From Lepidodermella squamata (lineage: Eukaryota; Animalia; Gastrotricha), in the NCBI GenBank assembly GCA_047495785.1, contig JBLDXI010000007.1, positions 1,612,001 through 1,676,000 on the forward strand: a stretch of 64,000 nucleotides of DNA, given 5' to 3'. The notes beneath the pieces are model-generated. The model ran no database searches, had not been told where the DNA came from, and saw only the letters and a list, made by a program, of their open reading frames with translations. This document shows positions 33,599-59,695 of the stretch, piece after piece (the first letter of the stretch is position 1; each line of letters begins with the position of its first letter). Position numbers and translations under genes: made by a program.

Positions 33599-36500
33599 TT
33601 AGACAAGGTGATGCTTACAGTTATTGAAAATCACACGCCACTCTTCGCCGCATTTCCGCGACGCTACCTGAGCGGGACATTGGCCATTCGCATCGCTAAT
33701 CGCCGGGTTCGCCCCAGCTTGAAGCAGCAACTCAGCCGCTTCCAAATCACCCCGCAAAACCGCCACCATCAACGCGGTATAACCATGCGTATTCGTCGCA
33801 TTTATATCAATGCCGCGATCGATTAAAATCCGTGCAGTTGCGGTGTCGTGATTTTTCACCGCCAACATCAATCCGTTGTAGCCATCGGCATCTTTTGCTT
33901 CGATATCAGCACCGGCATCGAGTAACAGCTTCGCCATCAAGCTATTCGCCTTCCATACGCTGATAAGCAGGGCGTTGTAGCCGTGCTGGTCTTTCTGGTC
34001 GACGTTGGCACCTCTTTCGAGCAAAAGGCGGACTAGGGCCATGTCTTCATTTCGAGTAGCGGCAATAAGAGCGGTTTCTTTGTAGACATTTTGATGATTC
34101 ATCTCCACCCCGGCGTCAATTAATAATCTCGCAATTTTCGCGCGTCTATTTTTAGCAGCCACGATTAAAGCTGAATTTTTTAATTCGTCAGTCTGGTGAA
34201 GGGAGGCGCCGTTCCGAATCAAGAGCCTGAAAATTTTAAAATTTTAATTTTAATTAATTTTGATTTTAACTAATTTTAATTTTAATTAATTTTGATTTTA
34301 ACCAATTTTAATTTTAATTAATTTTGATTTTAATTTTAAATTAACTAATTACCTAGCGATTTCAATGTGGCCCTCTCTTGCGGCGATGATAAGTGGCGTG
34401 TAGCCTTGATTCCCACTCAAATTCACATCAGCCCGATTTTCAACAAGAATCCGGGTCATTTCGATGTTGCCATCTTCGACGGCCATTATCAGCGCAATAT
34501 TGCCCTCGCTGTCTCTCGAATTCGGGTCAATTGCGCGTTTTTTCACTAGATACTCGACAACTTGTTGTTGATCACTGCGAATCGCTTCGAATAACGCGTC
34601 GATTGATGTTTGCGGCATTATATCAGCATCGAGGCCGCAGTTGAAGAGCAGCTCTAACACTTCGACATGGCCATTTGAAGCGGCTGATAGAATTGCCGAG
34701 GATACGCCGTCACGAGCACCAAACAATAGCAAAATTTTCACTGTGAAAATTTTAAAATTTCATATAATTATTTGTCAATTTTCAGCCAATAAATGAGCTT
34801 ACCTGAAGCGACATGGCCATTTTCAGCAGCCTTAACGAGGGCAGTTTTCCCACGCTGATCAGTTTGGTCGATCAGACATTCGATGTCTGTTTTAGCTGAA
34901 GATTTCAGAAGCATCTGGATGACTGAGATGTGGCCATTCGAAGCTGCGCGCATCAAGGCAGTCCTTGATTATGCAAAATATTATAATAAATTTGTTGCCT
35001 TTCGAATAAATTCAGGTCCGGCAGCCTTTTACCTGTGGCTATCATCGAATAGCATCGGATTGGCCTTAAATTGCAGCAAAATTTTGACAAGATTAGAGCA
35101 ACCATTTTTTGCCGCTATCATGAGAGATGTGAATCCTCCTTAATAAATAATTAAATTAAAAAAATGATGACCATTGAAAGATAGCTTACGATTATCCCGC
35201 GAATTAACGTTCGCTCCGCTATTCAGCAAAAACTGAGCAATCATCGTGTGTCCGAAGCAAGCAGTCAGAACTGTGAAATTGAAAAAATAGTGTTGGGCCA
35301 TGGGTCATGGGTGTAATCGAATTACTCAATGCACTAGCCCCAGTTTTTCGATACTTCATTTCGATATCCGCGCCAAATTCAACCAATAATTGAACCGCGG
35401 CGATATGGTTATTCTTGACAGCCATCATCAACGCAGTGAGGCCGTCATTAGTCGTCGCATTAATGTCTAGGAGACCCGTCGAAAGCAACAACTTTGACAT
35501 TAACACATCACCTATATTTCAATTTAAAAAAAAATCAGAATTCGGAGAAAAGATAAAAAATCGAGCTATACCTCGATGAGAACTCATCATCAACGCATTT
35601 CGGCCGTAGTTATCCGCAACGGAAATCAGTGACTGTTTGGACCTAGCGAGCAACAGCTTCGCAATGTCGATGAACCCATTTTCGCACGCAGTTTTAAGAA
35701 TTGTCGAGTTACACTCGTCAACTAAACCCGGGTCAGCGCCGTAATTTTCAAGAAGCGCCTTGGCAACATGGCTCTGCCCAGCCTCGGCAGCAAGATGTAA
35801 AGCGGTCAGACCGCAGTGGTCGGTTTTATTGACATTCGCTCCGAGTTGTATCAAGACTTGGCAAGTTTCGAGATGGCCGTTTTCGGCCGCTCTCATTAAA
35901 CCTGTTCTCCCGTTTTCATCCTGAGCATCGACTACGGCACCTTTTTCTATCAGCAATCGAATGATAGGAACGTTGCCCTTCTCAGCTGCGGCAATTCTAG
36001 AGGAAAAATCGTTCGAAATTTCCAGAAAAAAATGAAAAATAAATAGAATGATAACAGTTTTGGATCATTTTCAAATTTCAAATTTCAAAATTTGAGTTTT
36101 TAAATTTTGAATTTTCAAATTTGAATATCGAATATTGAATTTTGAATTTTGAATTTTGAATTTTTAAATTTTTAAAATTTCGAATGTTTGAATTTTTGAA
36201 TTTTTGAATTTTGAATTTTGAATTTTGAATTTTTGAATTTTTGAATTTTGAATTTTGAATTTTGAATCTTGAATTTTGAATTAATTTTGAATATTAAACT
36301 TTTAAATTGTTAAATTTTCGATTTTCAATCTAATTTTTTTTTTAATTTCGGCAACCTAGGACTTACAGCGCTGATACGCCATTATTATCCTTGAAATTGA
36401 GAGTCGCTGGACAAGCCAGAAGAAGCATTTCAACAGCTGGAAGCTGGTTATTCCAAGCTGCGATTTGCAAGGCACTTCTTCCATGCTTATCAACAGCTTT

Positions 36501-39500
36501 TAGGCCCGAAACAGCGCTGCTCTGAAGTAGCATCAGCCGTAGAATTTCCACGTTATCGCCAGTGGCTGCTAACATAAGCGGCGATCGGCCATTTTTATCG
36601 CGCGAATTTACATCGGCGCCGCGATCTAGTAAAATCTTCACGATTTCCGTATTGGAATCGTAAACTGCTCGGCTGTGATAAAAGAAAAAAAATTAACTAT
36701 TATTTTTCCACTCTCAAAAAAGTCCCGTACCCCACTTTTCGGTCCCATTCTAAACGCAAATGTCACTTTATATTTTCATAAATGTCCTTTAATGGGTAAA
36801 GGAACGTGTACATTTTGAAATCTTGCCACTTGTCCCTTTATCGGCTTTAATTGTCCCTTAGTAGGCTAAAGGGACAGTTTCAATGCAAAACAAAACCCGA
36901 ATCAGAGAGAAATTTTGCCAATTGACAAAGGGACATTTTCAGTGCTCAAAAACTAACATATTTTTTAGGTAAAACTAAAAATGTCACTTTGTCATAAAGG
37001 CTGATAAATTTTGTGCATATGCAAATAAATTGGCTGGAATACACGCTGATTACTCAGGAGTGGGGTCAAAGAATAATTTTCAGTGAAATTCCATCTCGCG
37101 TCGATCTTCAATTTGAACCTTGGACTCCATCTACTACCCATGACCACCTTCATCTACCTTTGCTCTTACCACTTCCCTGACACCTCACTTGACGCCCTTC
37201 TAATAGATAATAGATTGTATTAGATTCTGAGCGTTGAAGTTGAGAGGATCTTCTGAACTCAGAAGATCGATAGATCAACAATATGAATAAAAATAATGAA
37301 TGAACCCACGGATGGACTACAAACGTCACTGATAATCATCGAAATAACGGGACCTTTGCGTTTTATCAATCAATATTACGATGAAACGAAGATAAATTTA
37401 ACATTATAGTTGTCTTTGTTCTCCTCCATTGCGTAGAGGAGAATGGGTACGCGGGAAGAACTTTGTCACGTTCTAAGTAAGGGACAATTACTCGATGACA
37501 AAGGGACATTTTAGAAGCTTTTATCACTGCTCGCGGCTAATTTGTCCCTTTATCCCAAAAGAAAGTGACAAAGTTCTTCCCGCGTCTTTATTCTTTTTGT
37601 ATAGGGCTATAACGGGACTTTTATGAGAGTGTTCAGATTCAATAAAAAACCTCAAGGCAGTTTTGCCGAATTCATCAATTGCGTTCAAATCCGCACCAGC
37701 TTCGATAATAAGTTGAACAACTGTCGGATTTCGACTCCAAACAGCCGCCATGAGGGCAGTCCTTCGATGATCATCCACAGCATTGATTTCAAACTCCTTC
37801 TGCTCCAACACAAATTTCACCAAATCCGATTTCCCACTCAAAGCCGCGCTGATTAGAGGTATCAGGGTAGCGTGGCCATTTTTAGGCTGATGAACTTTGG
37901 TTTCTTTGTACAACATTTTCGCTACTTCGAGATGGCCATGTTCCAATGCGATGATTAGCGCTGTTTTCCCATGAGCATCCTTAGTACCAGGATGGGCACC
38001 TGAGTCGAGTAAAAACCGGGTTAAATCAGGCAAACCTCGAGCTGCGGCCATTACCAACGCAGTTCGCCCGAATCTTGGCTCATTCGCGGTTAAAAGACCC
38101 TTCCGATACGGCGCAATTTGTTGACTTTCAATCAACATTTTAACCAAGTCAAAACCGTCGTAAGATGTCGAGTAGACGAAAGATTGGCGGATGAAGGCCT
38201 CCGCGACCTTTGACCTCGCGCAAATTAGACCAAAAGACTTGACTATACCAAATGATCGACGTTCATCCTTAGCCAGGGTGTTCACAAATCGGCTGAATAA
38301 TTCTAACCACGTCGATTCGAAAATTGGCGATTCGTTGTGAGGATTTTGATCTTCGAGTAAGAAGCCGTAAGCGTGTTGAAAAAAATAGTCGCATAAATTG
38401 ATGACGATTAGCTGGCACTCGGAAAATCGCCACAAATAATCGGCTGATTCGACAATGGCGATGATCTTCGTTAGTAGCCGCTTCCTGCCAAGTCGGAGTG
38501 CCTCGTGGAATGTCGACTCGATATTTCCGTTTTCGGCGATAAACGCGGCGGATATCATTGCACATCGCATTTCAGAAACATTTTCACTAAAATTAAAAAT
38601 AACGATAAAAACTAAAAATTTAAATTTAAATTCAACTTTTTCAATTACCCTAATAGAAAATTTCCTAAAAATCAATAATTAATGAGAAAATTATTATCAA
38701 CTGTCAAAACTGTAGTTCTCCAGAAATTCGTATAAAATGGAAAATTTTAATTTCAATTTTCAAATTTCTCAAAATTATAATTCTTATAAGTTTCCTGGTT
38801 TTCGGAATAAAATACCTATTCAAGTTGAGATTTTGACGCTTAGCAGCGAGGCGAAGGGTAGCATTGAATACGATCGAGTGAACGCAGAACAACTTGTTGT
38901 TAGCTTTGTCAGTTGATTCGGATGAAATGAATTCGCCATCGATAAGTGGCCTGATTAGGGATTTTCGACAAAATTCCTGGCAACGTCGTTCAGCTTCAGG
39001 TCGTCCAACTTTCCTATTGAACAAAGCTTTCGAATTTCAAATTTTTTCAGAGATATTTCGAGTCTATACCAAATAAGCATTAAATCATCGATATCAACAG
39101 CTTCACCGGGTTCGAACAGTAGAAAAGATCGCCAAAACGAATTCCCAACCAAAATCGAATCCAGCAATTTCAGAGCAAGTGAATCGATCGAATCATCGCT
39201 GAATTGCATCAAATCTTCCCCGCCCGTGTTATCAATCTCGAATTTACTTTTTATCAGCGAAGCAATCAAAGGCGATCCTTTGCATAATTTCGCTAGTTTT
39301 GGGACATCGCTTTGATTCGGCAATGATTTTTCCAATATTTGAGCCATTTGCGAATCGGGAATTTTCGAAATTTCAATGCAATTTAGCGGCAATTTTTCGT
39401 CCGTATGCAACCCAACTTTTTTGTTTAAAATTGCGACGCAACGAACTACAGGATTCAGATTGGCCATAACGTAGGACAAGGCCTCGATATCCGTAACACT

Positions 39501-40844
39501 GTCGACAACGATTAATATCGACTGATCGGGTAGGAGGCATACATTTCGAGCAATGTGATCGTTGATTTTCGCGAGTAGTGTCTGGTTAATCAGGGCCGAT
39601 GCTGGGCTGTCAAGGTCCAGGCTATCAATGCCGAAAGCTGTCACCTGATCGGTGCCAAGCAATAACCGGCCAATTTCGGTGATTAAGGAGTTACTTGAAG
39701 CTCGAGTTCCGCTAGATGGGGGCGATAGTTGTTGCATATCGAGCCAAATTAAACTGGCAACTCGACATTTTTCGGCGAGAAATTTCGAATCGTAAGCGAT
39801 AGTTGTAACCAGCGATGTAGTGCCAAGGCCAGCATCCCCAACTAGCCACAGAACTTTTTCTACAGCAAAAAAATTGTGAAATTGATCATGAAATAATCCT
39901 GAAAAATTCTTCACCAGTATTAAGCCTTGTAGATTGGTCCAACAATTTTTCAACAGCACTGTAAATCGCGCTTTGTTCGATGCGTTGTAGTCTGAAATCG
40001 GCACTTATAGTCGGAAATTTCCCCAGCCGAGGAATTCTTGAAACAATAAAAATGCACATTGAATCTTGAAGGGTGCCAATTAGACACCCTAAGAGTGTGG
40101 AGCAAAGTCGATATCGATTTCCTGTATCGATTTTTGATTTTACAAAGCAGTGATTTCCGATATCCGATATCAGAGCCCTATAGTTATCTAACGGTACCAG
40201 GAAGCTGAAGAAAAAACCGCAGGGTGAATCATTATTGATCAGGAAATTGAAACAAAATGGGAAAATGTATCGCTGGAACCTCAATTTTAGCCATTTATTA
40301 AGCGATTGGACCCAAGGTAAAAATTAAAAAATTGCAAACCTTGTATTTTCGACGAGGCATTCTGTTATCGTGTCGATAATGCCCTGGTCCGCCTTTGGCA
40401 ATAAATTATGATCATCAATCAAAGCCCGAATTCCATGTGTTCGCAAATCCCTGAAATACATGTTTTGCCATTAATTAATTAAAAAAAATAAAAACCCCAC
40501 CTTAAAAAATCGAAATTTCGAATTTCGTCATGCAATGCCAGAGTTTGAAACATTTTCTCGAGTCGCGTTTCAGGACTGACTTCTTTAGTGATTTGAAGGC
40601 ATTCGGCCGGTGTCAAAGCGCCTGATCGGCAAATGACGCCGAGTAGTCGCTCCATAACGGCGCTGTCTACCGGTCCATGACTCAAATCGAATAGCTTCGT
40701 GATTGCTCGTAAAAAGTCAGCCATTGATAAATTCGGCTGCCCGGTAGTTTTCAAGGATTCAGATTCGTACTTGGCAAAATCAGGCGTTGAAGTTAGCCAA
40801 ACCGGCAGGAAATTTCGATAATAACTAGAATCAATATTATCCAT
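33599..40844 (-). CDS. Apaf-1-like CARD + NB-ARC + ~25 ankyrin repeats (~1649 aa). Exons 40844-40501, 40450-40340, 40204-39915, 39859-39070, 39013-38816, 38586-37651, 36672-36367, 35996-35572, 35511-35326, 35270-35190, 35138-35033, 34963-34803, 34740-34353, 34226-33599
   Basis: All 13 introns are GT-AG and phase-consistent, giving 4950 nt. Motifs: CARD (GALTPAE..R..D..F..L..G..L), P-loop GDAGLGTT, Walker B ILIVVDSV, CKGSPLIASLI, QEFCRKSLI, VHS, then G-TAL-A---GH ankyrin units. A further in-frame 51-bp intron may lie in exon 3. Confidence 0.82.
36070..36300. repeat. Intronic (TTTTGAA)n-type tandem repeat
   Basis: More than 20 imperfect 7-8 bp units within intron 35997-36366. Confidence 0.9.
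36709..37631. mobile_element. Non-autonomous CACTA/CMC-like element (923 bp) in intron 36673-37650
   Basis: TIR CACTCTCA(A/T)AAAAGTCCCGT at both ends; 3-bp TSD TTC (36706-36708, 37632-37634); subterminal AAGGGACA/TGTCCCTT repeats. Confidence 0.8.
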
Positions 40845-41377
40845 GATGTTCAGTCAAGCGTAAAACCAAGGTGCGCATAAATCTGAGAAAATTTCTGCTA
40901 TGCTATTTTGGTGCTATTTCGATGCTATTCATATGCTATGCCGAGTGGTAATTCAAGGGGAAAATTTACCTAGAGTGTTCTGCATAAATGAGCCGTAACC
41001 CTCAGGGCATATAAAGGCTACAAAATCGATTAATTAGATCGGAGTCTCTATAAATTCTAAAGAATAGCACTGAATTCTCTCTTCAAATGTCGAGTTAGAT
41101 TTGCCACAGGTGTTTGTTATTTTAAACTGATTATAAGTCAAGACAACATTACACGTTCATAATATCGCCTGAATAATGTCTGAAACGAGTGAGCAGGTTC
41201 AGTTGTTTTTTTCAACACGTGCATCTCATTCAGAAAACTAGCTGCGCCATATTACGAAAATACCGCTCGACAGAGCACGTGCTCCCGTCAGGTGGTCTAA
41301 TGCTCGTTGAATTAAAATTCTGTATCAAGCTTGTCAAGTAAAAGCATTTTAACCTCACTAAAAATTATAAGAAATTT

Positions 41378-42229
41378 TTATTGAACCTCTTTGCGCATTT
41401 TAGTAAGAATTAGGTCATAGATGGGCAATAAAAGCGCGGCCCCGACAGTTCGAATTGCACTTGAGCCGACCCCGCGATAAAACCCAGCCACGCCGTTTTT
41501 CCGCCAAATTTTGACCCAGCATTGCCACAACGTCAACCCAGACCCATACCTAACTGACAGCCGATGTCGAACAATGTCAAAAGGATAGGCAATAAAACTG
41601 GCTGTTAGCGTTGTTGTTTGCGCAATAGCCCATGAGAAGAAAAACCCGGGCGGGTCGAGTTTGTTCTGTGAAAAAGCTGATATCAGGGTTTCATACAGGC
41701 CAAAATAACACGCTCGCTACACGGTCACGCATTGAAGCGACGGTAAAAAGCCGCGATACCAGCCTCGAAAACTTCGCGTGTAATTACTCTCTGTTAGACT
41801 TGTCAGCTTTTCGCCAATATCCGTCGCGGAAAAACTTGCGCCAAACGCCGAGTACATCGGGTAGAGCGTAACCACAGTTGTCGCGCCAGCCAAAGCTCCG
41901 GCGGCTAGGTTAATCGCGAAAATTCGCTTCGGTGAATGGGGAAAATCTGTCATTTGATCGTCGGTTTGGCGAAGGAGAGCTGCGCGAAATTTCGAGTTGA
42001 AAGCGAACGTAAAACCTTCGATAGGCACGCCACGCATGATGTTGAGGACATTTCCGGACCAGTAGGCCATGTAACGGTTTTGACTGAGTTCTGTTGCCAT
42101 TTCGACGTAATTCGCTACGGGAGAAATTACAGTTTTAGCCGCCACAGTCGCCAGACCAGCCGCCATAAAATCACGTGCAAAATCATTGAAATAAACACTT
42201 CTTTTCAAATCTAAATTCGAGTTTTCCAT
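41378..42229 (-). CDS. Divergent ADP/ATP carrier (SLC25/ANT)-like paralog A, intronless, with one in-frame TAG at 41719-41717 (readthrough, null allele or young pseudogene)
   Basis: DFMAAG..AKT, WSGN, NLAAGALAGATT..YP, YRGFLPS; after the TAG the frame continues RACYFGLYET..SWAIAQ..AYPFDIVRHRL..FYRG..RTVGAALLLPIYD..Q to TAA. Confidence 0.75.
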
Positions 42230-42290
42230 ATTTTTTCTATGAAAAATGAAAAAAATACCATTGGATTTGTGTTTTAATTTTTTTTAAATT

Positions 42291-43404
42291 TTAGGCACTG
42301 TGCCTTTGGTCTTCAAAAGCCTCGTGTTGTTTCATGTTTTTCTTGACAATTCCGTAAAAAACGAGAGTCAGAGACGCGCCAATATTGCGCATGCCACTAG
42401 CCAGGCCGCCCTTGTAAAAACCGCCCTCATTTCGGACACTTTCAACAGCGCGCCACAAGGAAGGCTGGCGATGCAGGCCCCTACCCTCAGCGTGCATGCC
42501 GATGTAATGACGGCGAACCATGTCGAGCGGGTAGACGAAGTAGGCTGTTGCGGTTGTAGTCAGCCAGGCAATGGTCCAGTCAGTGATGAAATTCGAGTTG
42601 CCAGGGTACGTGTTCAGGTAGCTTTGGGCTGTGTCGTAGAAACCGAAATAACCGGCGCGATACAGGGCGGAGCAGCCGAGGGAAGGCAACAGGCCACGGT
42701 AAACCCCGAAAAAACCATGCGATCGAAGTTTAGCTGAAACAATTCCAAAAATAAAAAATTTGAAAATTGGGTGAAACTTTTAAATTCATAAAATTCATTG
42801 TAAAATTAAAATTAAAATTGAATAAAATTAAATTAAAAAAATAAATTAAATTAAAAATAAATTTATAAAATTTCAAATTTAACTAAATTTTGAAAATTTA
42901 ATTTAATTCAATTTGAATTATACCGAGAACAGCTTTTTGGTAAGTTTTGAGGCGATGATGGCCAATAGGCTTCGTCTCGTCTAGCTCCAATATTGGCGAT
43001 GTAACAGGATAGACAATCAGAACCGTGCTCAAACCAGCCGCAGCTCCGGCCGCTAAGTTGGCCCCGGCAAATTTGTAAAAATCAACGCCAGAATCCGTGC
43101 TTTGCGTTGTTTGAAACGCGCGTTTGTAGTGGTCGTAGAAAGAAAATGCGATGCCGTCGATGAACATTGTTCGGGGCAGGCTGCGTAGGTTATCTGACCA
43201 GAAGTAGCGGTCGTAGTGCGGCTGGGAAACCAGGCTGCCGTATAGCTTCACGCGTTCAACGCCGGCAAACATGAATTTACCGACCCCGGTGGCTAGGGCG
43301 CCGGCGAGAAAGTCACGTGACATGGCGTGGGCCATGTCGAACTGCGAGCCTTCCGGCGCATGGGGAACGACTGAATCTAGGTTTGAAGCTGCTGTAGAAT
43401 TCAT
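42291..43404 (-). CDS. Divergent ADP/ATP carrier (SLC25/ANT)-like paralog B; exons 43404-42924 and 42733-42291 (307 aa)
   Basis: DFLAG..ERVKL, NLAAGAAAG..VYP, YRG..YRAGYFGFYDTA, YPLDMVRR, FYKG; phase-1 GT-AG intron joins in frame. Confidence 0.85.
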
Positions 43405-44446
43405 GACTGTAAAGCAAACAATTATAAACAGAGCTCGAAGTTGAACTGAGACTGAGACGTGAGGCCATAGGTTACGCAATTGATTGCCTAACAAACGGAA
43501 AAATCAGAGAAAACGTGTCGGTTTTTTCAGGACAAAATGAAAATAATTTGCGCGAGTGTCTGAATTGTCGAAACTGCCGATACTGGCTGAATAAACCTTC
43601 GAGGAGGTAGCAAAAGTTTTTTCATAATTTTTTCCATCGGACCACCTTTCGTCCTGCACAAACCTCACGGCGATCGGAATTTGAATTAATTTTTGGAAAA
43701 TCTTCCAAGCGGATTTCAACGTAGCGTGTGCATTTCAAACAAAAATCTTATTCGGATTATTAAATAGCCAAGAATAGATAAAATCACTTTTGGTCTCAAA
43801 TTTCAAAACCTTCCAAGGAAAGGCAGACTGTGAATGGCGGAAAAGATGTAGTTTTTTTACCAAGAATTTATCCTTCGTTACGGGTTACGGTACCCTGACC
43901 AGGTTTTTTCCATCTTTAATCTTCAATTTCATGTAAAAATTTGTGAGGAAATTCCGTCTGACTCTTTCATGTCACTTGTTAACGAAACTCCAGCCGTGGT
44001 AAATAGTCATGAATTTTCCTCATTCGATATTCGATCGAACTCCGCCTTATAAATTGTTTGCAAAAGTTGCATTCAGGCGGTCGTATTTTTTATGCCTCGG
44101 GAGTTCGAAGACATTATTCTTCGACCTCATCGCAGCAAAATCGGCGACGCAACGCGCGCTACGGCGCATAAAAAACAGCACACGTGTGATAATCGCTAAT
44201 CATGCGAAATAAGACAGAGGTAATAAAAATTAACGGGTTGCCGCTCATTTTTCTGCTATAACGCAATTTCCACGCCGCATAAAGCGGCGAAGATAAATGG
44301 TCACCTGTCAAGAAGTGGAATCACTGGTTCGGAAGAGCTGCGAATCACCCTAATTAGTACATGTCCTCGGTATAAAATGGCGAGAAAAGTCTCTAGAACC
44401 ACACATTTTCGCGCAGTCTTTCTACTTGCATTTTTTTATTCGCATA

Positions 44447-46188: not shown

Positions 46189-47667
46189 ATGGCTGTGAAC
46201 CCTATTCATCAGCTGTTTATTTGCCGTGGAAAATGCCAACTCTCCTCGCGCGGCTACGATCAGCAGCTATTCCGACTGGCTCGAAGAATTATTGACAAAA
46301 CTAACGGCCAACTTGCAAGTATGACAAAAATGGAACCCGAATCTGAACCGAACACAATCGATCTCGAGCCTCTGAAGCTACAACTACCTCTATTCGACCA
46401 CGAGCTCCATCTTGATATGCCTAAACACGATCGCCTGGTCATCAAAATGCCTCTCGATCGACATAACCAACGCGTCTATCCGATAATTATTGAAATTATT
46501 GCGAAATTTCTGGAAAAGTCCAGAAAAACTTATTTCAGTCCTCAAACCGAAATTTTACTCTGCTGCTACGTCATGGAGCAAGATTCGACAAATTTGGAAA
46601 AAATCTTGGCTGAAATGTCCGATATTCCAAGTTGCATAAAAACTTCGTTGGTTCGATTGTCAATTCAACAGCAATTTTTCGCCGGACTTGAAGTTCTGCT
46701 GAAAAATGGCGCATCGCCCCATTCCAGCCTAAGAATCACCGAAAAAGCTGGTTTAGTTGGTTATGTGATCGACTGCTTCGAAGATCGATTTCCATCAAGG
46801 CCTGACGGGCCGTTCTTGAGCCAAGTTCTCAAATTCCTGATCAAGAACGGCGCGAAAAAACCTGATAGCTCCATCTTCGAGAATCGGACTAAATCAAATT
46901 CTGACCAGCCGAAAATTGTTGACAGAATTCTTGAAAATCGCCAAAAAAAATGCCGATTTTTCTATAAAATTAACGAAAAATCGCCTCGAGATCATGCAGT
47001 TCGGAATACGATCATGCTAGCGATGATGTTCGACGCCGAGGGGGCTGAATTATTTCTATCAGCAACTCCAAAATCGGAATTGAACACGGCTCTCAGGGCT
47101 TGTTTCGACCCATTGCTTATGTACATGTTGGACACTCAAATATTCAACAGCGTAATGGCGTTCGCAATTCTACCGCTACTTAGAGCCGGTGCTGTGCTAC
47201 CCGGCGATTTAACTGGAATTTCGCCGATTTTATCGAAAAATCCGTTTCTTCAATGCTTCGAACGGGCTAAAAATGACTTCTCAATCGCGAAAAGGCCGCA
47301 TTTTATCATCTCATTTTTGTTGGAAATTTGCTCGTCGAATTCGTTTGACCGTAACAAGTTATTGGACACCCTGAACCGTGAAGTAACTTCCAGCTCGCAG
47401 ACCAACCGCCGCCGGCCTGAAATCGCGAATTCGATTGTACTCGAGACTAAATTGACTGCCGTCAAAAACCTGGTCGAATTTCTTCATTTCTGTTTCCCGC
47501 GGCGATTGCAGGCTTTGGCTCGTTCAAAAGTGCTGGAAAATCTGCCAATCGGGGTTCCGGACCGGAAAAATGCCGTGAAAAGTCTGGACCTGCCGAGATG
47601 CCTTGAAGATTACTTGTTGCTGAACGATTTGGAGGAAATTATTAAATTTTCCATGATAAGGCGATAG
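46189..47667 (+). CDS. SOCS-box protein with degenerate ankyrin-like segments (ASB-like E3 adaptor), intronless
   Basis: C-terminal PRRLQALARSKV..VKSLDLPRCLEDYL is a SOCS box; LLKNGASP, LIKNGA and LLRAGA resemble ankyrin ends. The start could be a later Met. Confidence 0.75.
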   Translation: MAVNPIHQLFICRGKCQLSSRGYDQQLFRLARRIIDKTNGQLASMTKMEPESEPNTIDLEPLKLQLPLFDHELHLDMPKHDRLVIKMPLDRHNQRVYPIIIEIIAKFLEKSRKTYFSPQTEILLCCYVMEQDSTNLEKILAEMSDIPSCIKTSLVRLSIQQQFFAGLEVLLKNGASPHSSLRITEKAGLVGYVIDCFEDRFPSRPDGPFLSQVLKFLIKNGAKKPDSSIFENRTKSNSDQPKIVDRILENRQKKCRFFYKINEKSPRDHAVRNTIMLAMMFDAEGAELFLSATPKSELNTALRACFDPLLMYMLDTQIFNSVMAFAILPLLRAGAVLPGDLTGISPILSKNPFLQCFERAKNDFSIAKRPHFIISFLLEICSSNSFDRNKLLDTLNREVTSSSQTNRRRPEIANSIVLETKLTAVKNLVEFLHFCFPRRLQALARSKVLENLPIGVPDRKNAVKSLDLPRCLEDYLLLNDLEEIIKFSMIRR

Positions 47668-51095: not shown

Positions 51096-54000
51096 ATGGC
51101 TAAACGCAGGAACGTCGCGATTTTAGCATTGGCATTACTTCTGCTTGAAATCTGCTACACAGCTTTGGCTCTTTCGCGTTACAAAAACTATACAGATGCT
51201 AGCAAATTCAAACGACCAAGGACAGGTGATGGTGACTCACCCGAATGTCTGCCATATGAATATTTCTGCAAAGCTACTTCAACTTGTTTGCCCATACGAG
51301 CAGTATGTGATGGCGCATCGGATTGCCCTGATGGTCAAGATGAAACTAACTGTAGATGTAAGCTTTCCCAAAACCTCGGCACATTAATTCTATTTAGGAA
51401 TTACTTTCCAGGCTGTGATGGAGCTTGTGACTGCACTGTAGCGAAATGTGTGAAAGAAACCTGGCTGTGTGACGGCCAACTAGACTGCCCAGATGGGACA
51501 GATGAGAATCCTTTAAGCTGCCCATCAGGGACAAAGCTCAACTGTGGACGAAATCTGTACCCATGTCAAAGTATTAAAAAATGTATCGACGATGGTTGGG
51601 TCTGCGACGGAGATTTCGATTGCCCAGATGGGGCTGACGAAATGGAATGTCCGGGAGTTAATGTTACCTGCTCTTATGGAATGTTCTCTTGCAAGGATGG
51701 ATCGAGATGCATCCGCAAAAGTTGGCTTTGCGATGGAACTAGTGACTGCACTGATGGCTCAGATGAAAGCGATTGCGTTGTATCCATTAGTCCACCAAAT
51801 TGCGGCCCGACGAGGTTTCTATGCCAAAACGGCTTGAAATGCATAGATTCGAGTCGGATTTGCAACGGCCAGAACGATTGCTCAGACGGTTCGGACGAAA
51901 TGTCATGCAAAACCTGCCACAAACGGTTTCAATTCCAATGTAAAACCAATGGGCAATGCATTCCCATAAATGGACGATGTGATAGGATTATCGATTGCAA
52001 AGATGGATCGGATGAAAGCGACTGTCCGTCAAGGTGCCCCTACTTTTGCTTGAATGGTATATCAACAGGCAACGAGAATTGCTTCGGAGAGGCTCAAAGG
52101 TGCGACGGCATAATCGACTGTGTCCTTGGTAACGATGAAGCGAATTGTACAAGTAAATTGCTTCGTAATTTGTGTGAAAATGCAATTTTAATCAGCAATT
52201 TAGCTTGCAAATCTGGGGCGAGAAAATGCGCAACTTCGAATCGATGCATCCCGAGATCTCGAGTGGTATATTACTTGTCCTAAGAATGAGGTCAAATATG
52301 ATTTGTGTTTTTTATAGTGCGATGGAATAACGGATTGTGACGAAATCTCGAAAGACACAACCGATGAGCAGAACTGTCCGTGTAACTCTGAGTCCTTTCT
52401 CTGCTCAGATGGGTCATGCGTTCGGAGAAATCGGGTTTGCGATGGTCGGTGGGATTGCTCTAATGACGAACTGCAAAACTGCCCATGCCTGAGCCATCAA
52501 CTGAGCTGCGACAATGGCGAATGTGTGAAGCATTTTGACGCGAGGTTTGGATGGGACCATCTCAGCACAATTCAAGGTTTTTGCGATGGGAAGTTGGATT
52601 GTCATGATCGGAGTGACGAAACTCATTGTCAAAAGGTGAGCAGAAAATCTTCTAAATTATGCTAGATCCCAAATGTATCCCAACTTTTCAGTGCCCGAGC
52701 GATCGTCCTGTTAAATGCGGAAATTCAAGCATCTGCATCCATCGTAAGTTTCTGCCTTAATCTAAACCTTCCACAACTTTCCTTAATCTTAGAACATAAA
52801 CAATGCGATGGCTTCGTCGATTGTCCTGATGAAACGGATGAATCAGACTGTCCAAACTGTAACCGGGAACAATTCAAATGCATCGATATTAGAACTGGTT
52901 ACTTCCGATGTATCCCCTTGGACAAACATTGTGATGGCTTTGCCGACTGCCGCGATGCTGTGGACGAATACGGATGTACCGAATGTAACATATGTATATA
53001 TTAGTGAGCATATTAGTGTTTCGCGCCGCTTGGTTGCGCGCCCGCCTCGGAGTGGCGCGCACGCTATAATTGCGCCTGTTCGCTATTGGTGCGCTCTATA
53101 ATTGTACAGCGTTATGATTGGTTAGAACCGTTCTAGAAACTTCTATACCCTTGTTCTAGTATATTCGATTCCCGCCATATAACCATATATAAAGTCACTA
53201 ATTTATGGGAATAAAGAAGATTGAAGTTTGCTCACTAGTCTCGTGTTTGATTCTTACATTTTGGTGGCCACTGCCCCGAATCTCGCCTTCGTTCTTTTGT
53301 CACTAGTATGCCGCTCAAGCCGAAACCGCCCGTTTTCTCTGCCGGCTGCAACATCCGCGAGTTTGTGCAGCAATTTAATCGTTACCTGGACCTCGCGGGG
53401 GTCAACCTCTCTCAGGCGCAACGCCTTCAACACCTGTCCGTCGCGCTTCCCACGGACCTCTACCGCTTGTTGGATGTCGAGATTACTGCCGCCGCTCCGG
53501 CCGACAATTTCAACACCGTCACCGAGCGCTTTTTGCTGGCCGCCGGCGCCCCGCCACCCGATCCCGCTACCGAGCAGGCTGCCTTCGAGGCTGCGAAGCC
53601 GAAGTCCGGCGAGAACATGGCCGCGTTCGCTGGTCGCCTCGGTGTGCTGGCTTCAACCGCCTACTCGACGATGGACGCAGCCGCTCGCGCCCTGCTGGTC
53701 AAACGCCGTTTCATCGCCGCGATGGCCGCCGATCACCCGGACGTCTACAAGGCGCTCGAAGTCGCCCAGCCCGCCACTGTCGCCGATGCTGTCAAGATCG
53801 CGACCGCTCACTTCCGCGCTGACGAGCTGATCAACGCCGCCAAGTCGAGCAACGGCAAACCGCTTGCGCCTGGTGCTGTTCCGCAAGCGGCAGGTACTGT
53901 CACTCTTAATTCTACTTCTCACTCGGCGGCTAGTGCCCCGCCTGTAGCCCCGGCCCCAGCTAGTGCGCCTCCGGGGGGGTGCGAATAGCTCTGCACTGCC

Positions 54001-57000
54001 TAGCTCGAGTTTGACTAGCAATATCTCTGATCTCGTTAGTTTTGCTCGTGCCTTGCGCATTGCTGATCGCCGTGGTAGGGGCCCTAGGCCTAGCTTTCAG
54101 TCTTACCATGCGCGACGAGGCATGGCCCCCTCGTTTGCCATGCGTGGCTCAGGTAGACAATCGCGCGGCTTTCCGAATCAGCGTAGAAACAATCAGCGCT
54201 CTGCTTCTGCTTTTTCTGCGCCTGATAGTCGCAATGCGCCGTTCGAACGTCCGCATGGACAAGCGTGCTTCACTTGCCAAGGCGTAGGACATTTCGCTCG
54301 TGACTGCCCAAACGGGCAGAGGCCGGCCAGCCGTTTCTAAGCTGGTCGGCCAGGCCACAATTAGCGGCAGTTAGTACACGCCAGCGCGACTGTCGCATAG
54401 CTGTTAAAGTCGCTGGTCGTCAGGTGCTCGCTTTAGTTGACACGGGTGCAACTGTGAGTGTGCTGTCTGAGCGATTTGTGCAGTGGTTGAATGATGTGCA
54501 GTTGGACGATGTTGACGTAGAGCCTCTGTTAGGCGCAGATAAGTCGCTGCTTTCGGTCACCGCTGCTACAACAGTCGATGTAGTATTTCCGCCTGCGTTC
54601 TCGGTCGCACACCGCTTTCTTGTGAGCCCTGATATCATGACTGATGTGACCCTTGGTTATGACTTTATGACAATGCATGGTGTATGTTTGGATGCCGCAA
54701 GTAACTCGTTCATTATAGCTAATCAAAATTATCCTATCATCGGTGGGAGTGTGACGAGTTCTGTGAGGAGTGTGGTGCGCGCTGATGAGCATATTTTGGC
54801 GCCTGCACAACTAGAGGCACGCGACGCGCTGCTGCGCCAATATTCTTTTCTTTTTGACGGTAAACCAGGTTCTACGCACCTTGCCGAACATTCGATCGAC
54901 ACTGGCGACGCGCCGCCGTGCCGTGCTTACCGCCGACCTCGTTCTCCCGCCGAGCTTGCTGAAATCGACCGACAGATCGACGAAATGCTCGCCAACGGCA
55001 TCATCGAGCCGTCGACCTCGCCGTGGTCCTCAGCGATAGTTCTCACCAACAAATCTGATGGTACCAAACGCTTTGCCATCGACTACCGTCGCCTCAATGC
55101 TGTTACTCGAAAGACCGTCACGCCGTTGCCACTTCACGTCGAATTCTTCGATCGCCTCGCGGGTGCTCAGCTGTTTTCAGTGCTCGACCTAAAATCGGGA
55201 TATTGGCAAATTCCGATCAACCCTCGCGACCGCCACAAGACCGCGTTCGAAAGTCATCGAGGCCTGTTCCAGTTTCGGTACATGGCATTCGGCCTGTGCA
55301 ATGCCCCGTTTTCGTTCCAGACGCTGATGAACAACGTTCTTGGTGACCTGATCTACCGTCGCAAAGTGCTCGTCTTTCTCGATGACATCATCATTTGGTC
55401 GTCGTCAGTCGAAGAACATCTACAACTGCTGGAAGAAGTCTTCATTCGTCTCCGTGATGCTGGTCTCAAGCTGAATCTCAAGAAGTGCAAGCTGTTCGCG
55501 AAGCAAGTCAAGTACCTTGGCTTCATCGTCGACGAAAACGGAATTCGCCCTGATCCTGCGAAAGTCCGTGCAATCGAACACTTCCCGCGCCCGGCTACCG
55601 CTTCGGAGCTACGTCGCTTTTTCGGCATGGCAAGTTATCTACGTCGACACGTTCGCAATTTCGCCCAGCTGGCCGCGCCGTTCTGCGATTTGCTCAACGC
55701 CAAGGACGACGAGTTCTTCTGGACCAAGGCTCAGGAAGACGCGTTTCAAGGACTGAAGGCTGCAATCATCGAAGCTGTCGCGCTCGCTCACCCTCGGTTC
55801 GATCTACCGTTTCGAATCTCTGCCGATGCGTCAGACACTGCTGTTGGTGCCGTGCTCGCTCAGGTTCAAGATGGCATCGAGACGCCGATCGCCTTCGCAA
55901 GCCGCAAGCTCAATCAAGCCGAACAGCGTTACCCGACCACGGAGAAAGAAGCACTCGCTCTTGTTTTCGCAACGCAGCAGTTTCGTCACTACATCCACGG
56001 CGCTCCTGTCGTTTTGCTGTCAGATCACAAGCCGCTCAAGGGTCTGCGCACGTCGCCGAAATTGTCGCCGCGCATGCAACGCTGGGTAATCTGGCTGGAG
56101 CAGTTCAACTTCGACATCGAGTACGTGCCTGGTTCGCAGCAAATCGTCGCCGACGCTCTCTCTCGTGCTCCTGTCGACAGCGCCGATGACCGTTTCGACG
56201 ATCTCGCGTTTCCGCCGCTCGTTCGCCAAATCGACATCACCCGCGATTGCCAGCTGGAGGACGCTTATGTTCGACAACTTCAGCTCAACGACCCGGTGCT
56301 CGGACCCGTTCTACAACAGCTCGACGCCGACCGCCGTCGCCGCCCGACCGCTGACAACGAACAAGGCCGCCGCTTCGCCGCGAAGTTTCGTCAGATCCGC
56401 CAAATAAGTGGACTCTTCTACCTGTGCGTCAATGGTCGCAATTTGCTGATTGTTCCCGAGGCATTACGTTCTGAAGTCTTGTACTACTGCCACACGTGCA
56501 CAATGGCCGCTCACCCTGGTATCGCTGGAACGATGGATCGCTTGCGTACGTCTTACTACTGGCCTACGATGGGCAACGATGTTCGACGATTCGTGCTCGC
56601 CTGTTCGTCGTGTGGTCAAGCCAAGCCGTTCAATCAACGCCGCTCAGCGCCGCTTCAGTCGATCGAAGCCTCGTTTCCGCTCGAGTACGTCTCGATGGAC
56701 GTCGTCTCGTTGCCGTGGACGCCTCGTGGGCACATGGGCTGCCTCGTCATCACCGATCTCTTCACCAAGTGGGCCGAAGTTTACCCGCTGCTCAATCACA
56801 CCGCGGAGGAAATCGCACCAAAGGTTGTCGATTTTATTGCTCGTTACGGTATTCCGTCTTTTTTGCTTTCAGATCAAGGAGCTGAGTTCGAATCCGCGTT
56901 GCTCGAGAAGTTGTACAATCATCTTGGCCTTAGGAAGATCCGCACGGCAGGTCATCATCCGAAAACTGACGGTCAGGCCGAACGCTGCAACCGCTGTCTC

Positions 57001-58422
57001 ATCGAAATGCTCCGGGCGACTACAAACGATCGCCGTTGTCATTGGGACGAAGTGCTGCCCGCCGTTCTCTTCGCCTACCGCTCCGCTGTCAACTCGTCGA
57101 CCGGTTTCAGCCCGTACGAGCTGCTCTACGGCCGTCCGCCCAGGCTGCCCGGTCACTTGATCCTCGCCGAGTTCACGCCCGCTCGTCGCCCGCCGGAAGC
57201 TCACCTGGCTCAGCTTCAACACATTCTGCAACGCCAGTGGGAGCAGGCCCGCGCCAACCTCGACGAAGCCCGGCTACGTCAAAAGCGCTACTACGACCGC
57301 TACGCCAGCACTCGTCAGTTCGAGAAGGGCGATCTTGTTTGGATAACCGCTCCGACTCGCACGGCCAAGCTGCTTCCGGTGTTTCTGGGACCGTACCGCG
57401 TTGAAGACCGCCTCGCCAACAACGTCAACTACCGACTTCGAAAGCTGCCCGCCGAACAGAACGCGAACACCATCGTCGTCAACATCGACCGTCTCAAACC
57501 GTGTGGCCAGTTCGAGGACTGGATGTCTCGACCAACTACGCTGCCGCCTGCGCCAGCGCCCGCCAACGCACCGTCTCGCGTCATGACTCGTGCCTCGAAG
57601 CAACCGCAACGTTACGGCTACGTCGACACCGATTTCGCTCTGCGCGGCCTGGTTCGAAGCGTCGACTCACCCGTCTCGTTCGACTACGACTTCATCGTCT
57701 TTACGCTTATCTGTTTTGTGTTAACGCTTCTTTCGAGTTTCTGATAATGTTTGATGATTTCTGATATAATTTCCACTGTTCCTGATATTTGAACTTGAAA
57801 TTTGAGTATATTTGGCCTCACTGTTTTTTTTGGAGAGGGAGAGAGTGTTGCTGTTGTCTGTTATATTTTCAGTTGGCATTTCTTGTTGTCTGTTATATTT
57901 TCAGTTGGCATTTCTGTTTGATGTCCCTTGTATTATCAGTTGTCCTTGTACTATCTTATGCTACCGTCTTTGATATTTGTCTTTTGTTGCAAATTTCGAA
58001 AAATGTCTATTGTATTTTTGTGTTTGCGCTCATCGCCTCACCCCAGTAGCTTTTCCTAAAAGGGGGAGGTATGTAACATATGTATATATTAGTGAGCATA
58101 TTAGTGTTTCGCGCCGCTTGGTTGCGCGCCCGCCTCGGAGTGGCGCGCACGCTATAATTGCGCCTGTTCGCTATTGGTGCGCTCTATAATTGTACAGCGT
58201 TATGATTGGTTAGAACCGTTCTAGAAACTTCTATACCCTTGTTCTAGTATATTCGATTCCCGCCATATAACCATATATAAAGTCACTAATTTATGGGAAT
58301 AAAGAAGATTGAAGTTTGCTCACTAGTCTCGTGTTTGATTCTTACACGAATGCAAAGAAGGAGCCAAGAAATGCGCTGGATATCAGAGATGTTTCATGAA
58401 TGATAAGCAATGCGATGAGTAG
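51096..58422 (+). CDS. Secreted LDL-receptor class A repeat protein (12 repeats + partial 13th), interrupted at 52983 by a Gypsy element; remainder at 58351-58422
   Basis: Signal peptide; repeated CDGxxDCxDGxDE; short introns (e.g. 52266-52317, 52636-52691, 52745-52792); the empty site reads DEYGCTE|CKEGAKKCAGYQRCFMNDKQCDE*. Confidence 0.8.
53131..53143 (+). promoter_or_regulatory. Heat-shock element in the LTR (second copy at 58219-58231)
   Basis: TTCtaGAAacTTC gives three alternating nGAAn units, between an ATTGG and TATATAA (~53186). Confidence 0.55.
53308..54340 (+). CDS. gag: Gag with CCHC knuckle; frame break at a G7 run (53973-53979)
   Basis: PPVFS capsid-like N-terminus; CFTCQGVGHFARDC lies in the +1 frame; deleting one G fuses the two ORFs. 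Confidence 0.85.
54304..57744 (+). CDS. pol: Pol (PR-RT-RNase H-IN), probably expressed by -1 frameshift
   Basis: LVDTGA, LDLKSGYWQI, FGLCNAP, FLDD, DAS..AVGAVL, HHCC, SDQG.EF, GQAER, GPYRV; frame is open from 54304. Confidence 0.95.
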   Translation: MPKRAEAGQPFLSWSARPQLAAVSTRQRDCRIAVKVAGRQVLALVDTGATVSVLSERFVQWLNDVQLDDVDVEPLLGADKSLLSVTAATTVDVVFPPAFSVAHRFLVSPDIMTDVTLGYDFMTMHGVCLDAASNSFIIANQNYPIIGGSVTSSVRSVVRADEHILAPAQLEARDALLRQYSFLFDGKPGSTHLAEHSIDTGDAPPCRAYRRPRSPAELAEIDRQIDEMLANGIIEPSTSPWSSAIVLTNKSDGTKRFAIDYRRLNAVTRKTVTPLPLHVEFFDRLAGAQLFSVLDLKSGYWQIPINPRDRHKTAFESHRGLFQFRYMAFGLCNAPFSFQTLMNNVLGDLIYRRKVLVFLDDIIIWSSSVEEHLQLLEEVFIRLRDAGLKLNLKKCKLFAKQVKYLGFIVDENGIRPDPAKVRAIEHFPRPATASELRRFFGMASYLRRHVRNFAQLAAPFCDLLNAKDDEFFWTKAQEDAFQGLKAAIIEAVALAHPRFDLPFRISADASDTAVGAVLAQVQDGIETPIAFASRKLNQAEQRYPTTEKEALALVFATQQFRHYIHGAPVVLLSDHKPLKGLRTSPKLSPRMQRWVIWLEQFNFDIEYVPGSQQIVADALSRAPVDSADDRFDDLAFPPLVRQIDITRDCQLEDAYVRQLQLNDPVLGPVLQQLDADRRRRPTADNEQGRRFAAKFRQIRQISGLFYLCVNGRNLLIVPEALRSEVLYYCHTCTMAAHPGIAGTMDRLRTSYYWPTMGNDVRRFVLACSSCGQAKPFNQRRSAPLQSIEASFPLEYVSMDVVSLPWTPRGHMGCLVITDLFTKWAEVYPLLNHTAEEIAPKVVDFIARYGIPSFLLSDQGAEFESALLEKLYNHLGLRKIRTAGHHPKTDGQAERCNRCLIEMLRATTNDRRCHWDEVLPAVLFAYRSAVNSSTGFSPYELLYGRPPRLPGHLILAEFTPARRPPEAHLAQLQHILQRQWEQARANLDEARLRQKRYYDRYASTRQFEKGDLVWITAPTRTAKLLPVFLGPYRVEDRLANNVNYRLRKLPAEQNANTIVVNIDRLKPCGQFEDWMSRPTTLPPAPAPANAPSRVMTRASKQPQRYGYVDTDFALRGLVRSVDSPVSFDYDFIVFTLICFVLTLLSSF
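54307..54351 (+). promoter_or_regulatory. -1 ribosomal frameshift signal
   Basis: C CCA AAC slippery heptamer in the gag frame, 7-nt spacer, then the 11-bp stem GGCCGGCCAGC/GCTGGTCGGCC. Confidence 0.8.
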
Positions 58423-58510
58423 TTCGCGAAACTTATCAAGCAAATAAACCTGAGTAAACATCGACTCATCTACATACTGATGTGTTAAACTAGGTATATT
58501 GCCTGCCAAT

Positions 58511-59695
58511 ATGCTTCTAAAATTGCTGCTAACTTGCTCGATTAGCGTTATATATGAGGCAAGGGCTGTCAATAAAACTGTAGCAGAGCGATTGCGTGTT
58601 GGATTACTTGAAGTATGCCCTGCCGCCGCCTCCAGCTATCTGCCAAGTGAATTCGTGGCCAGAAAGATCCATCCAGTTCAAGTCGAAGTTGCATTTTCGC
58701 TTTTCAGATTCATCAAAATTGATGACATCGATCAAAGACTCTCTATGCTAGTTGGTATGAGATACTCGTGGCCCTTCCCATGTGACGCCCTTTCTTGTAC
58801 TCAATTACTATCAGAAGAAGAATGTGCCGGGGTAGAACCTTATGAATTTGTCACGCTCCTCCCCCACGAATCGATATGGCACCCGGTTATGAACCATCTG
58901 ACTCTGTTCGAAGATCCCTTCCCGAAGAAGGCTGGTTACAGCGACATTCATGTGTATCCATTTTACTCAATGTCGGGAGTTTGGGGTTCAAGCGGACGAA
59001 TTGATGTTCTATGCTCAAATTTCTCCTTCCAGACATTCCCCTTCGATCTTTTGCATTGCGAATTGGTGTTTAGCTCGCTGGAATGGGCTGAGCTTGTCAC
59101 TTATTACCCGTTTAACTTCGAGATCGACGCTTCGGCTAGGAACAATTTTATCGACGACTCGGAAATTTGGGAAGTAGCAGAGCCGTTCACAGCGCGGCGA
59201 GAATTCGTCATCGAAACTAATGGCTCCCCTCTAAATATCACACGGCTCATTTACACGGTTCGATTCAGGCGCAAATATAACTATTACGTCTACAACGTAT
59301 TCCTACCAACTGTTGGGCTGTTTGCATTGCAAGTTTGCGGCTTGCTCTTGAGCCCTTTCACAGTGGAGAGGCCGAGTTTCGCAATGACAGTTGTACTCGC
59401 CTGTGCTGTTAATTTGAGTTTGGTCACCAGTATGTTACCGATAACATCCGAGCCAGTCTATTTGATTTACATGGTAACAGCTAAATTTCTGGCAGGCATT
59501 CTAGTGACTTTCTACACGCTGCTATTAAGCTCCATGGATCGGAAACTTCTCAGGCAGGAGAAGAAGATTTTCGGATGGTACCTCGGCGTTAGTTGTGCGA
59601 GATTTTATGACTTTGTAGCTGCTTCTATTGTAGTTTCTTGCATTACTCTTTTTGATATCGCACTCGTTATGTTAATGATTCAAGCATATGAATAA
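58511..59695 (+). CDS. Cys-loop ligand-gated ion channel subunit, divergent and intronless (394 aa)
   Basis: Signal peptide; IDDIDQRL, IWHP, C..FPFD...C, RRKYNYYVYNVFLP, ER before M2, LPITSE, four TM helices. Confidence 0.9.
   Translation: MLLKLLLTCSISVIYEARAVNKTVAERLRVGLLEVCPAAASSYLPSEFVARKIHPVQVEVAFSLFRFIKIDDIDQRLSMLVGMRYSWPFPCDALSCTQLLSEEECAGVEPYEFVTLLPHESIWHPVMNHLTLFEDPFPKKAGYSDIHVYPFYSMSGVWGSSGRIDVLCSNFSFQTFPFDLLHCELVFSSLEWAELVTYYPFNFEIDASARNNFIDDSEIWEVAEPFTARREFVIETNGSPLNITRLIYTVRFRRKYNYYVYNVFLPTVGLFALQVCGLLLSPFTVERPSFAMTVVLACAVNLSLVTSMLPITSEPVYLIYMVTAKFLAGILVTFYTLLLSSMDRKLLRQEKKIFGWYLGVSCARFYDFVAASIVVSCITLFDIALVMLMIQAYE

Follow-up and report, generated by a model that had tools for sequence, protein, structure and literature searches.

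Does an NB-ARC domain in which the nucleotide-switch motifs have changed still belong to a working gene, and if so, what could such a domain do? This question is raised by a minus-strand gene in a 64,000-nucleotide stretch of the Lepidodermella squamata genome (contig JBLDXI010000007.1, positions 1,612,001 to 1,676,000; referred to here as the window), for which an initial annotation had proposed that all three switch motifs are altered in an otherwise intact gene. We examined the motifs, the predicted fold, the gene model and the only relative that could be found, and we favour, at a probability of about 60%, the view that this is an intact, selectively maintained animal gene in which the NB-ARC domain would serve as a fixed pseudo-switch.

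The altered Walker A and Walker B motifs that had been reported within 38860-39860, GDAGLGTT with Thr in place of the invariant Lys and IVVDSV with Ser in place of the second Asp, are both present there on the minus strand (Table 1). Neither the window protein nor its homologue has the canonical Walker A pattern GxxxxGK[ST] or the canonical Walker B pattern hhhhDD/DE, the latter reading LIVVDS in the window protein and LIVIDS in the homologue. The GxP motif had been described as kept, and it was found in both proteins at the start of a helix of helical domain 1 (HD1), as CKGSPLIA in the window protein. As for the proposed change in the MHD-equivalent, which reads VHS in both proteins, the Asp is indeed replaced by Ser, but the His is unchanged, and family members vary at the first position, Apaf-1 itself having LHD. 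In addition, we detected a fourth altered element that had not been noted before, in that the sensor-I arginine expected after strand 4 (the 'TTR' of RNBS-B) is missing from both proteins, with this place being set by strand 4 of the structure model and not by a residue-level structural alignment. The P-loop retains its glycine frame and Walker B its first Asp, and the GxP proline and the histidine of the winged-helix domain (WHD) are likewise kept. The placing of the motifs also fits the model of the relative, where the P-loop lies between strand 1 and helix 1, the Asp-Ser pair ends strand 3, GSP opens the HD1 helix and the His-Ser pair lies between the WHD hairpin and the last WHD helix. The Thr, Ser and Ser codons (ACT, AGT and TCG) are 2-3 substitutions away from Lys or Asp codons, and because each replacement takes 2-3 base changes, one base-call error cannot explain any of them.

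We compared the gene with its relatives, and an exhaustive phmmer search of 1.84 billion representatives returned a single one, P0001 (1376 residues; E 5.6e-37; 38% identity), which is the gene of a metagenomic animal and has P0002 as a near-identical cluster mate. These two are located on two ENA metagenome contigs of 8 kb and 25 kb that represent one species. Word searches with exon 4 and with P0001 residues 1-340 gave no relatives besides P0001, and a scan of metagenome contigs with the alignment of the two proteins produced 585 pattern matches of which 0 were confirmed. The NB-ARC-ankyrin part of the homologue is one unbroken 4.1-kb reading frame, and three short upstream exons join to it to give a 1544-residue protein. 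Aligned end to end, the window protein and this homologue are 41% identical, with values of 30% in the N-terminal head, 35% in the nucleotide-binding domain (NBD), 28% in HD1, 57% in the WHD, 35% in the HD2-like region and 44% in the ankyrin array. Ortholog comparison had been suggested as a check on the motif changes, and the homologue likewise carries GTT, DS and VHS, and not GKT/DD, together with the same GSP. Introns 1-3 have the same position and phase in the window gene and in the homologue gene (L002), including intron 3, which is in phase 1 and three residues ahead of a conserved Trp; window introns 4-13 are absent from L002, and this would imply that a single gene has gained or lost introns on a massive scale between the two lineages.

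Joining exons at GT-AG sites gave a gene of 14 exons and 4782 nt, with 1593 codons and a single terminal stop, which is colinear with the 1544-residue homologue across its full length and bears out the description of an otherwise intact gene. For exons 1-6, which encode the N-terminal 875 residues, three minus-strand frames were read and joined at GT-AG, while the exons beyond were guided by the homologue, as was the choice of the exon 6 donor at 37651. All 13 introns are GT-AG, with most having lengths of 50-126 nt and the longer ones 229, 303, 370 and 978 nt. An 875-residue gene stopping at 37524 was also considered and rejected, as the 37651/36672 splice restores a perfect ankyrin repeat and fits the homologue. 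Ankyrin repeats run from approximately residue 690 to the C-terminal end, and no WD40 propellers, which act as the cytochrome c sensor, were found in the protein. At the other end, the start Met of the homologue aligns with Met41 of the window protein (40724) and not with the Met at 40844, and the first 40 residues of the window protein are of low confidence in the model; the true start may be this second ATG at 40724. Intron 7 contains a low-complexity, microsatellite-like repeat at ~36080-36310, the translation of which gives FKIQNSK-type runs.

We next assessed whether the altered motifs are maintained by selection. Between the window gene and the homologue the proportion of synonymous differences (pS) was 0.80, which is saturated, and the proportion of non-synonymous differences (pN) was 0.41. 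An estimate of the ratio of non-synonymous to synonymous rates (dN/dS) had been put forward as a check, and purifying selection was recovered in that pN is far under pS, but the ratio itself is not calculable with a pS beyond correction. The two metagenomic loci differ at 6 codons (2 synonymous, 4 not), which is too few for a selection estimate. None-the-less, the comparison of the window gene with the homologue gives a clear indication of long-term purifying selection on the gene. Within the NB-ARC domain, the four motif windows are 64% identical (36/56) compared with 35% (91/261) for the remainder (hypergeometric p 5e-5), and the altered motifs are thus its best-conserved islands. Because the replaced motifs are kept as they are, the dead pocket does not appear to be a mere relic, and this suggests that the nucleotide pocket still has some use and remains constrained. 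Furthermore, the WHD and the ankyrin array are more conserved than the NBD, which is the reverse of what an arms race or a fast-evolving immune receptor would give and suggests that the protein has a constant partner.

Broken catalytic motifs could also point to a pseudogene in decay or to an artefact of assembly or sequencing, and we considered both but find this explanation scarcely credible here. Sequencing error was rejected, since the changes are multi-base and all are common to an independent relative from metagenomic data, in which the gene is open over 1544 codons, and a pseudogene was likewise rejected, since 1593 codons are open over 14 correctly phased exons and pN falls far under a saturated pS. 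In addition, of the words sampled from the stretch, 95% are present in a second public data set, although this may be the source sample. The replacements are therefore best read, from the comparison of the two genes, as old and conserved and as neither decay nor sequencing error. Separately, 18% of the sampled words of 36500-41000 were found in a 2015 run (possibly RNA) of another labelled organism, which may reflect transcripts or a related strain.

Assignment of the domain to the NB-ARC family rests on structure prediction, with the model being an AlphaFold2 model of homologue residues 1-340 and not of the window protein itself. In this model the structural elements appear in the expected order, and the three-subdomain NBD-HD1-WHD fold is like that of Apaf-1 and the plant receptors with nucleotide-binding and leucine-rich repeat domains (NLRs). 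Using Foldseek, the top ranks went to ADP-bound and full-length Apaf-1 (1z6t, 3shf and 3sfz; E 4e-11 to 1e-10), and then came NRC2 in its resting state, CED-4 and further plant NLRs. VIA-align gave Z 15.3-15.4 over 283-285 residues between murine Apaf-1 149-467 and model residues 1-340, with Z 15.1 for the NRC1 NB-ARC, 14.7 for 1z6t, ~12 for other signal transduction ATPases with numerous domains (STAND) and ~11 for Orc/Cdc6. The best Foldseek and VIA matches were to resting, ADP-bound forms. Likewise, an ESM-Atlas shape search recovered NB-ARC and STAND-TPR clusters at template modelling (TM) scores of 0.54-0.65, and language-model features put the domain among STAND/AAA P-loop clusters, NB-ARC included. 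We accordingly regard the domain, as modelled, as a highly divergent module of the NB-ARC type, as in Apaf-1.

Sequence comparison leaves some room for another STAND or AAA+ lineage, either NACHT/NPHP3_N-like or Orc/Cdc6-like, in which case the altered motifs would have been misassigned. All Pfam matches were below threshold, with NB-ARC (PF00931) at E 0.14 and NACHT at E 0.098 (12.9 bits; cut-off 26.7) for the window protein and NPHP3_N at E 0.002-0.006 (17-19 bits; cut-off 24.8) for the homologue; P0001/P0002 residues 1-520 gave no match to NB-ARC. Searches of PDB sequences using phmmer and profiles returned only chance-level rows, and Orc/Cdc6 chains do reach Z ~11 in the structural comparison. 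This assignment is none-the-less quite improbable, as Apaf-1, NRC1 and NRC2 exceed the other STAND proteins and Orc/Cdc6 by 3 Z units with matches that span the NBD, HD1 and WHD jointly, and the GxP motif and the WHD His are at NB-ARC places. The P-loop and Walker B assignments would, moreover, stand for any P-loop NTPase.

Returning to the fixed pseudo-switch, all of the NBD residues that drive the canonical cycle appear to have been lost: the P-loop has Thr for Lys, Walker B has Ser for its second acid, and at the sensor-I place the Arg has given way to Lys in the window protein and to Ser in the relative. The MHD Asp has gone as well. With these three NBD residues replaced, canonical hydrolysis is very unlikely, and we infer that ATP hydrolysis and the usual exchange of ADP for ATP are very unlikely to remain. 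In ATPases of this class, nucleotide binding is abolished when the Walker A lysine is replaced, as stated in PMC10698375, which cites Hanson and Whiteheart 2005. Taken at the level of the motif states, this argues against a canonical nucleotide-dependent cycle. The NB-ARC domain would then be a fixed and probably closed structural pseudo-switch, for which we envisage two forms: a latch without nucleotide that keeps NBD, HD1 and WHD in the closed arrangement, or a pocket that binds a ligand without turnover. The protein may act as a scaffold or adaptor whose interactions would be made through the ankyrin array and the WHD. The earlier description of a pseudo-ATPase in an intact gene is a fair one, given the predicted NB-ARC fold, the replaced catalytic residues and the conservation of these replacements across saturated synonymous divergence. 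The plant rule that a change of the MHD Asp leads to autoactivation, which had been invoked alongside, is not a suitable guide here, as it presupposes a working P-loop and this is absent in the window protein.

Several observations weigh against the fixed pseudo-switch. In Apaf-1, ADP is contacted by the proline of GxP and the histidine of the WHD, and these two residues, together with the P-loop glycines and the Thr-Thr pair, could still hold a nucleotide. The conservation of the motifs rests on two lineages only, as the two metagenomic loci represent one species. The confidence of the homologue model (pLDDT, predicted local distance difference test, 69) is moderate and is lowest around the P-loop, and the Pfam NB-ARC match of the window protein, at 11.8 bits against a cut-off of 23.5 bits, comes from the P-loop stretch alone.

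The N-terminal head was examined separately, and exon 1 and its homologue were folded using AlphaFold2 (pLDDT 68), with the folded piece lacking the part encoded by exon 2. This gave helices at residues 41-55, 61-74, 79-86 and 91-101. Pfam gave no CARD match for the head; Foldseek against the PDB gave a best E of ~1 with several CARDs at E 2-6, and a wide VIA search gave a best Z of 6.3, with the NOD1 CARD at Z 4.3 and rank 49. In the atlas, CARD clusters scored 0.79 by features, which is under the lead threshold, and made up 5/10 rows of the shape search at TM 0.40-0.44. A death fold of the CARD type is thus hinted at for the modelled head, as a lead only. This bears on the proposal that the protein is a dominant-negative decoy or inhibitor of the true apoptosome, in which the head would bind a CARD caspase or an Apaf-1-like protein while oligomerisation is impossible. 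The recurrence of CARD clusters among the weak matches of the head (0.79 by features; TM 0.40-0.44 in 5/10 shape rows; Foldseek E>1) would fit such a decoy, and dead motifs are what a protein incapable of activation might have, but no CARD match was significant and a CARD-only decoy would not need ~1500 further conserved residues, and we therefore consider this role very doubtful.

A further proposal was that the protein acts as the sensing member of a sensor-helper pair or network. Here the ankyrin array would detect a ligand, after which the protein would activate or seed a canonical paralogue of the CARD/TIR-NB-ARC-ankyrin type that is competent for ATP and carries out oligomerisation and signalling. 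Plant sensor NLRs do tolerate or carry defective P-loops, with the P-loops of RGA5, RRS1 and rice Pb1 being dispensable or degenerate, and the strongly conserved WHD surface (57% identity, with an invariant 16-mer) could be the partner interface. However, no second NB-ARC gene was detected in the 64-kb window by local tblastn, nor on the 8-kb and 25-kb contigs of the homologue, although unlinked partners are possible, and the stronger conservation of the ankyrin array, relative to the NBD, is easier to reconcile with a constant endogenous partner than with a pathogen sensor under rapid evolution. We regard a sensor role as possible but rather unlikely.

Table 1. Coordinates of the gene, its exons and its motifs in the window, with the homologue gene for comparison.
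Feature	Coordinates	Strand	Remarks
Whole gene	33599..40844	-	Helical (possibly CARD-like) head, NB-ARC (NBD-HD1-WHD), HD2-like helical region, ~27 ankyrin repeats
Exon 1	40501..40844	-	N-terminal helical domain; first ATG following a stop lies at 40844
Exon 2	40340..40450	-	End of head domain and linker; preceding intron matches L002 in position and phase
Exon 3	39915..40036	-	Linker into NBD strand 1
Exon 4	39070..39859	-	NBD, HD1, first half of WHD
Walker A / P-loop GDAGLGTT	39839-39816	-	Residues 200-207; Thr206 (ACT) at the Lys place; homologue GNPGQGTT
Walker B LIVVDSVT	39515-39492	-	Residues 308-315; Asp312-Ser313, Ser = AGT; homologue LIVIDSVT
Sensor-I place, strand 4, AILNKK	39417..39434	-	Arg absent (LNK); homologue GICNSS (CNS)
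GxP of HD1, CKGSPLIA	39284-39261	-	Residues 385-392, kept; homologue CQGSPLVA
Invariant WHD block FLLFEPGEAVDIDDLM	39078..39125	-	16 residues; 8/16 codons synonymously different from homologue, no amino-acid change
Exon 5	38816..39013	-	Second half of WHD, including MHD-equivalent VHS; separated from exon 4 by a 56-nt GT-AG intron
MHD place CVHS	38883-38875 (VHS)	-	Exon 5; Asp to Ser (TCG), His kept; homologue CVHS
Exon 6	37651..38586	-	HD2-like helical region and first ankyrin repeats (Pfam Ank families)
Exons 7-10	36672-36367, 35996-35572, 35511-35326, 35270-35190	-	Ankyrin array
Exons 11-14	35138-35033, 34963-34803, 34740-34353, 34226-33599	-	Ankyrin array, stop codon
Homologue gene	L002 9350-14140		Compared with window 33599-40844

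We also surveyed the rest of the window. On the plus strand, at least six to seven genes lie in tandem within 4509-31701, each without introns and 690-840 codons long; they have an ANF_receptor ligand-binding domain, to which the last adds a 7tm_3 domain, and this array looks like a lineage-specific cluster of class-C G-protein-coupled receptors. A GC-rich island at ~53228-57744 on the same strand (51-55% compared with a background of ~42%) contains a gag-like open reading frame and a second one of 1106 codons, which was read by eye as the protease, reverse transcriptase, RNase H and integrase of a Ty3/gypsy-type retroelement. Other neighbours are an open reading frame at 51096-52283 (plus strand), rich in Cys and DxSDE-type repeats and read by eye as LDL-receptor class A repeats, a SOCS-box protein at 46189-47667 (plus strand), a Cys-loop receptor ligand-binding domain at 58499-59695 (plus strand) and mitochondrial-carrier exons at 41717-43494 on the minus strand (Pfam E 9.8e-06 for 42898-43494), with none of these four being related to NB-ARC signalling. 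The receptor array, the frame read as LDL-receptor repeats, the SOCS-box protein and the Cys-loop receptor domain all indicate an animal genome. An Rfam scan of the window gave no matches.

When compared with known systems, the predicted protein most resembles Apaf-1, Dark and CED-4, which give the best structural match of the NBD-HD1-WHD and share a small helical head ahead of the NB-ARC, corresponding positions of the GxP motif (CKGSPL) and of the WHD His, and an HD2-like helical region behind the WHD. However, PDB searches detected no sequence similarity to them, the window protein has other residues in place of the P-loop Lys, the second Walker B acid, the sensor-I Arg and the MHD Asp, there are ~27 ankyrin repeats where these proteins have WD40 propellers (or, in CED-4, no repeats), and the CARD is only a candidate. 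With the degenerate-P-loop NLRs of plants it shares an NB-ARC in which the canonical nucleotide cycle is not needed or not possible. It differs from them in being an animal gene with an ankyrin rather than a leucine-rich-repeat sensor and with no linked helper gene, in the joint loss of all NBD catalytic elements, conserved over a deep divergence, and in a sensor array that has changed less rapidly than the NBD.

The same modular STAND design with repeats other than leucine-rich ones is seen in fungi, where Sordariales NLRs combine the NB-ARC with ANK, TPR or WD40 repeats (PMC12258605), and in early animals, with placozoans having an expanded NB-ARC repertoire (PMC6321704); in flatworms, caspases that carry ankyrin pro-domains have been described (PMC11463336). 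The fungal and placozoan proteins are recognised by Pfam and have canonical Walker motifs as far as described, whereas the window protein falls below all Pfam thresholds and has fixed dead motifs. In a limited literature search, an animal NB-ARC-ankyrin protein with conserved dead motifs was not described in PMC6321704 or PMC11463336. Because such a protein is invisible to Pfam and to sequence searches, genes of this kind would escape standard surveys of NLRs and apoptosis genes.

A broader and distinctly speculative idea, which we think unlikely, is that an ancient animal NB-ARC clade gave up the nucleotide cycle and reused its pocket, as a latch or for another ligand, to serve, independently of nucleotide, as sensor or adaptor in an animal network of the sensor-helper NLR type that is based on CARD/TIR-NB-ARC-ankyrin proteins and arose independently of plants. 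More generally, STAND switches such as Apaf-1, NLRs and plant R proteins are held to need ADP/ATP exchange, and natural members that have no such cycle may reveal functions that are independent of nucleotide. With what appears to be a complete and old loss of the Lys, the acid, the Arg and the MHD Asp in motifs that are themselves conserved, this gene would offer a natural test case for the repurposing of an animal nucleotide pocket.

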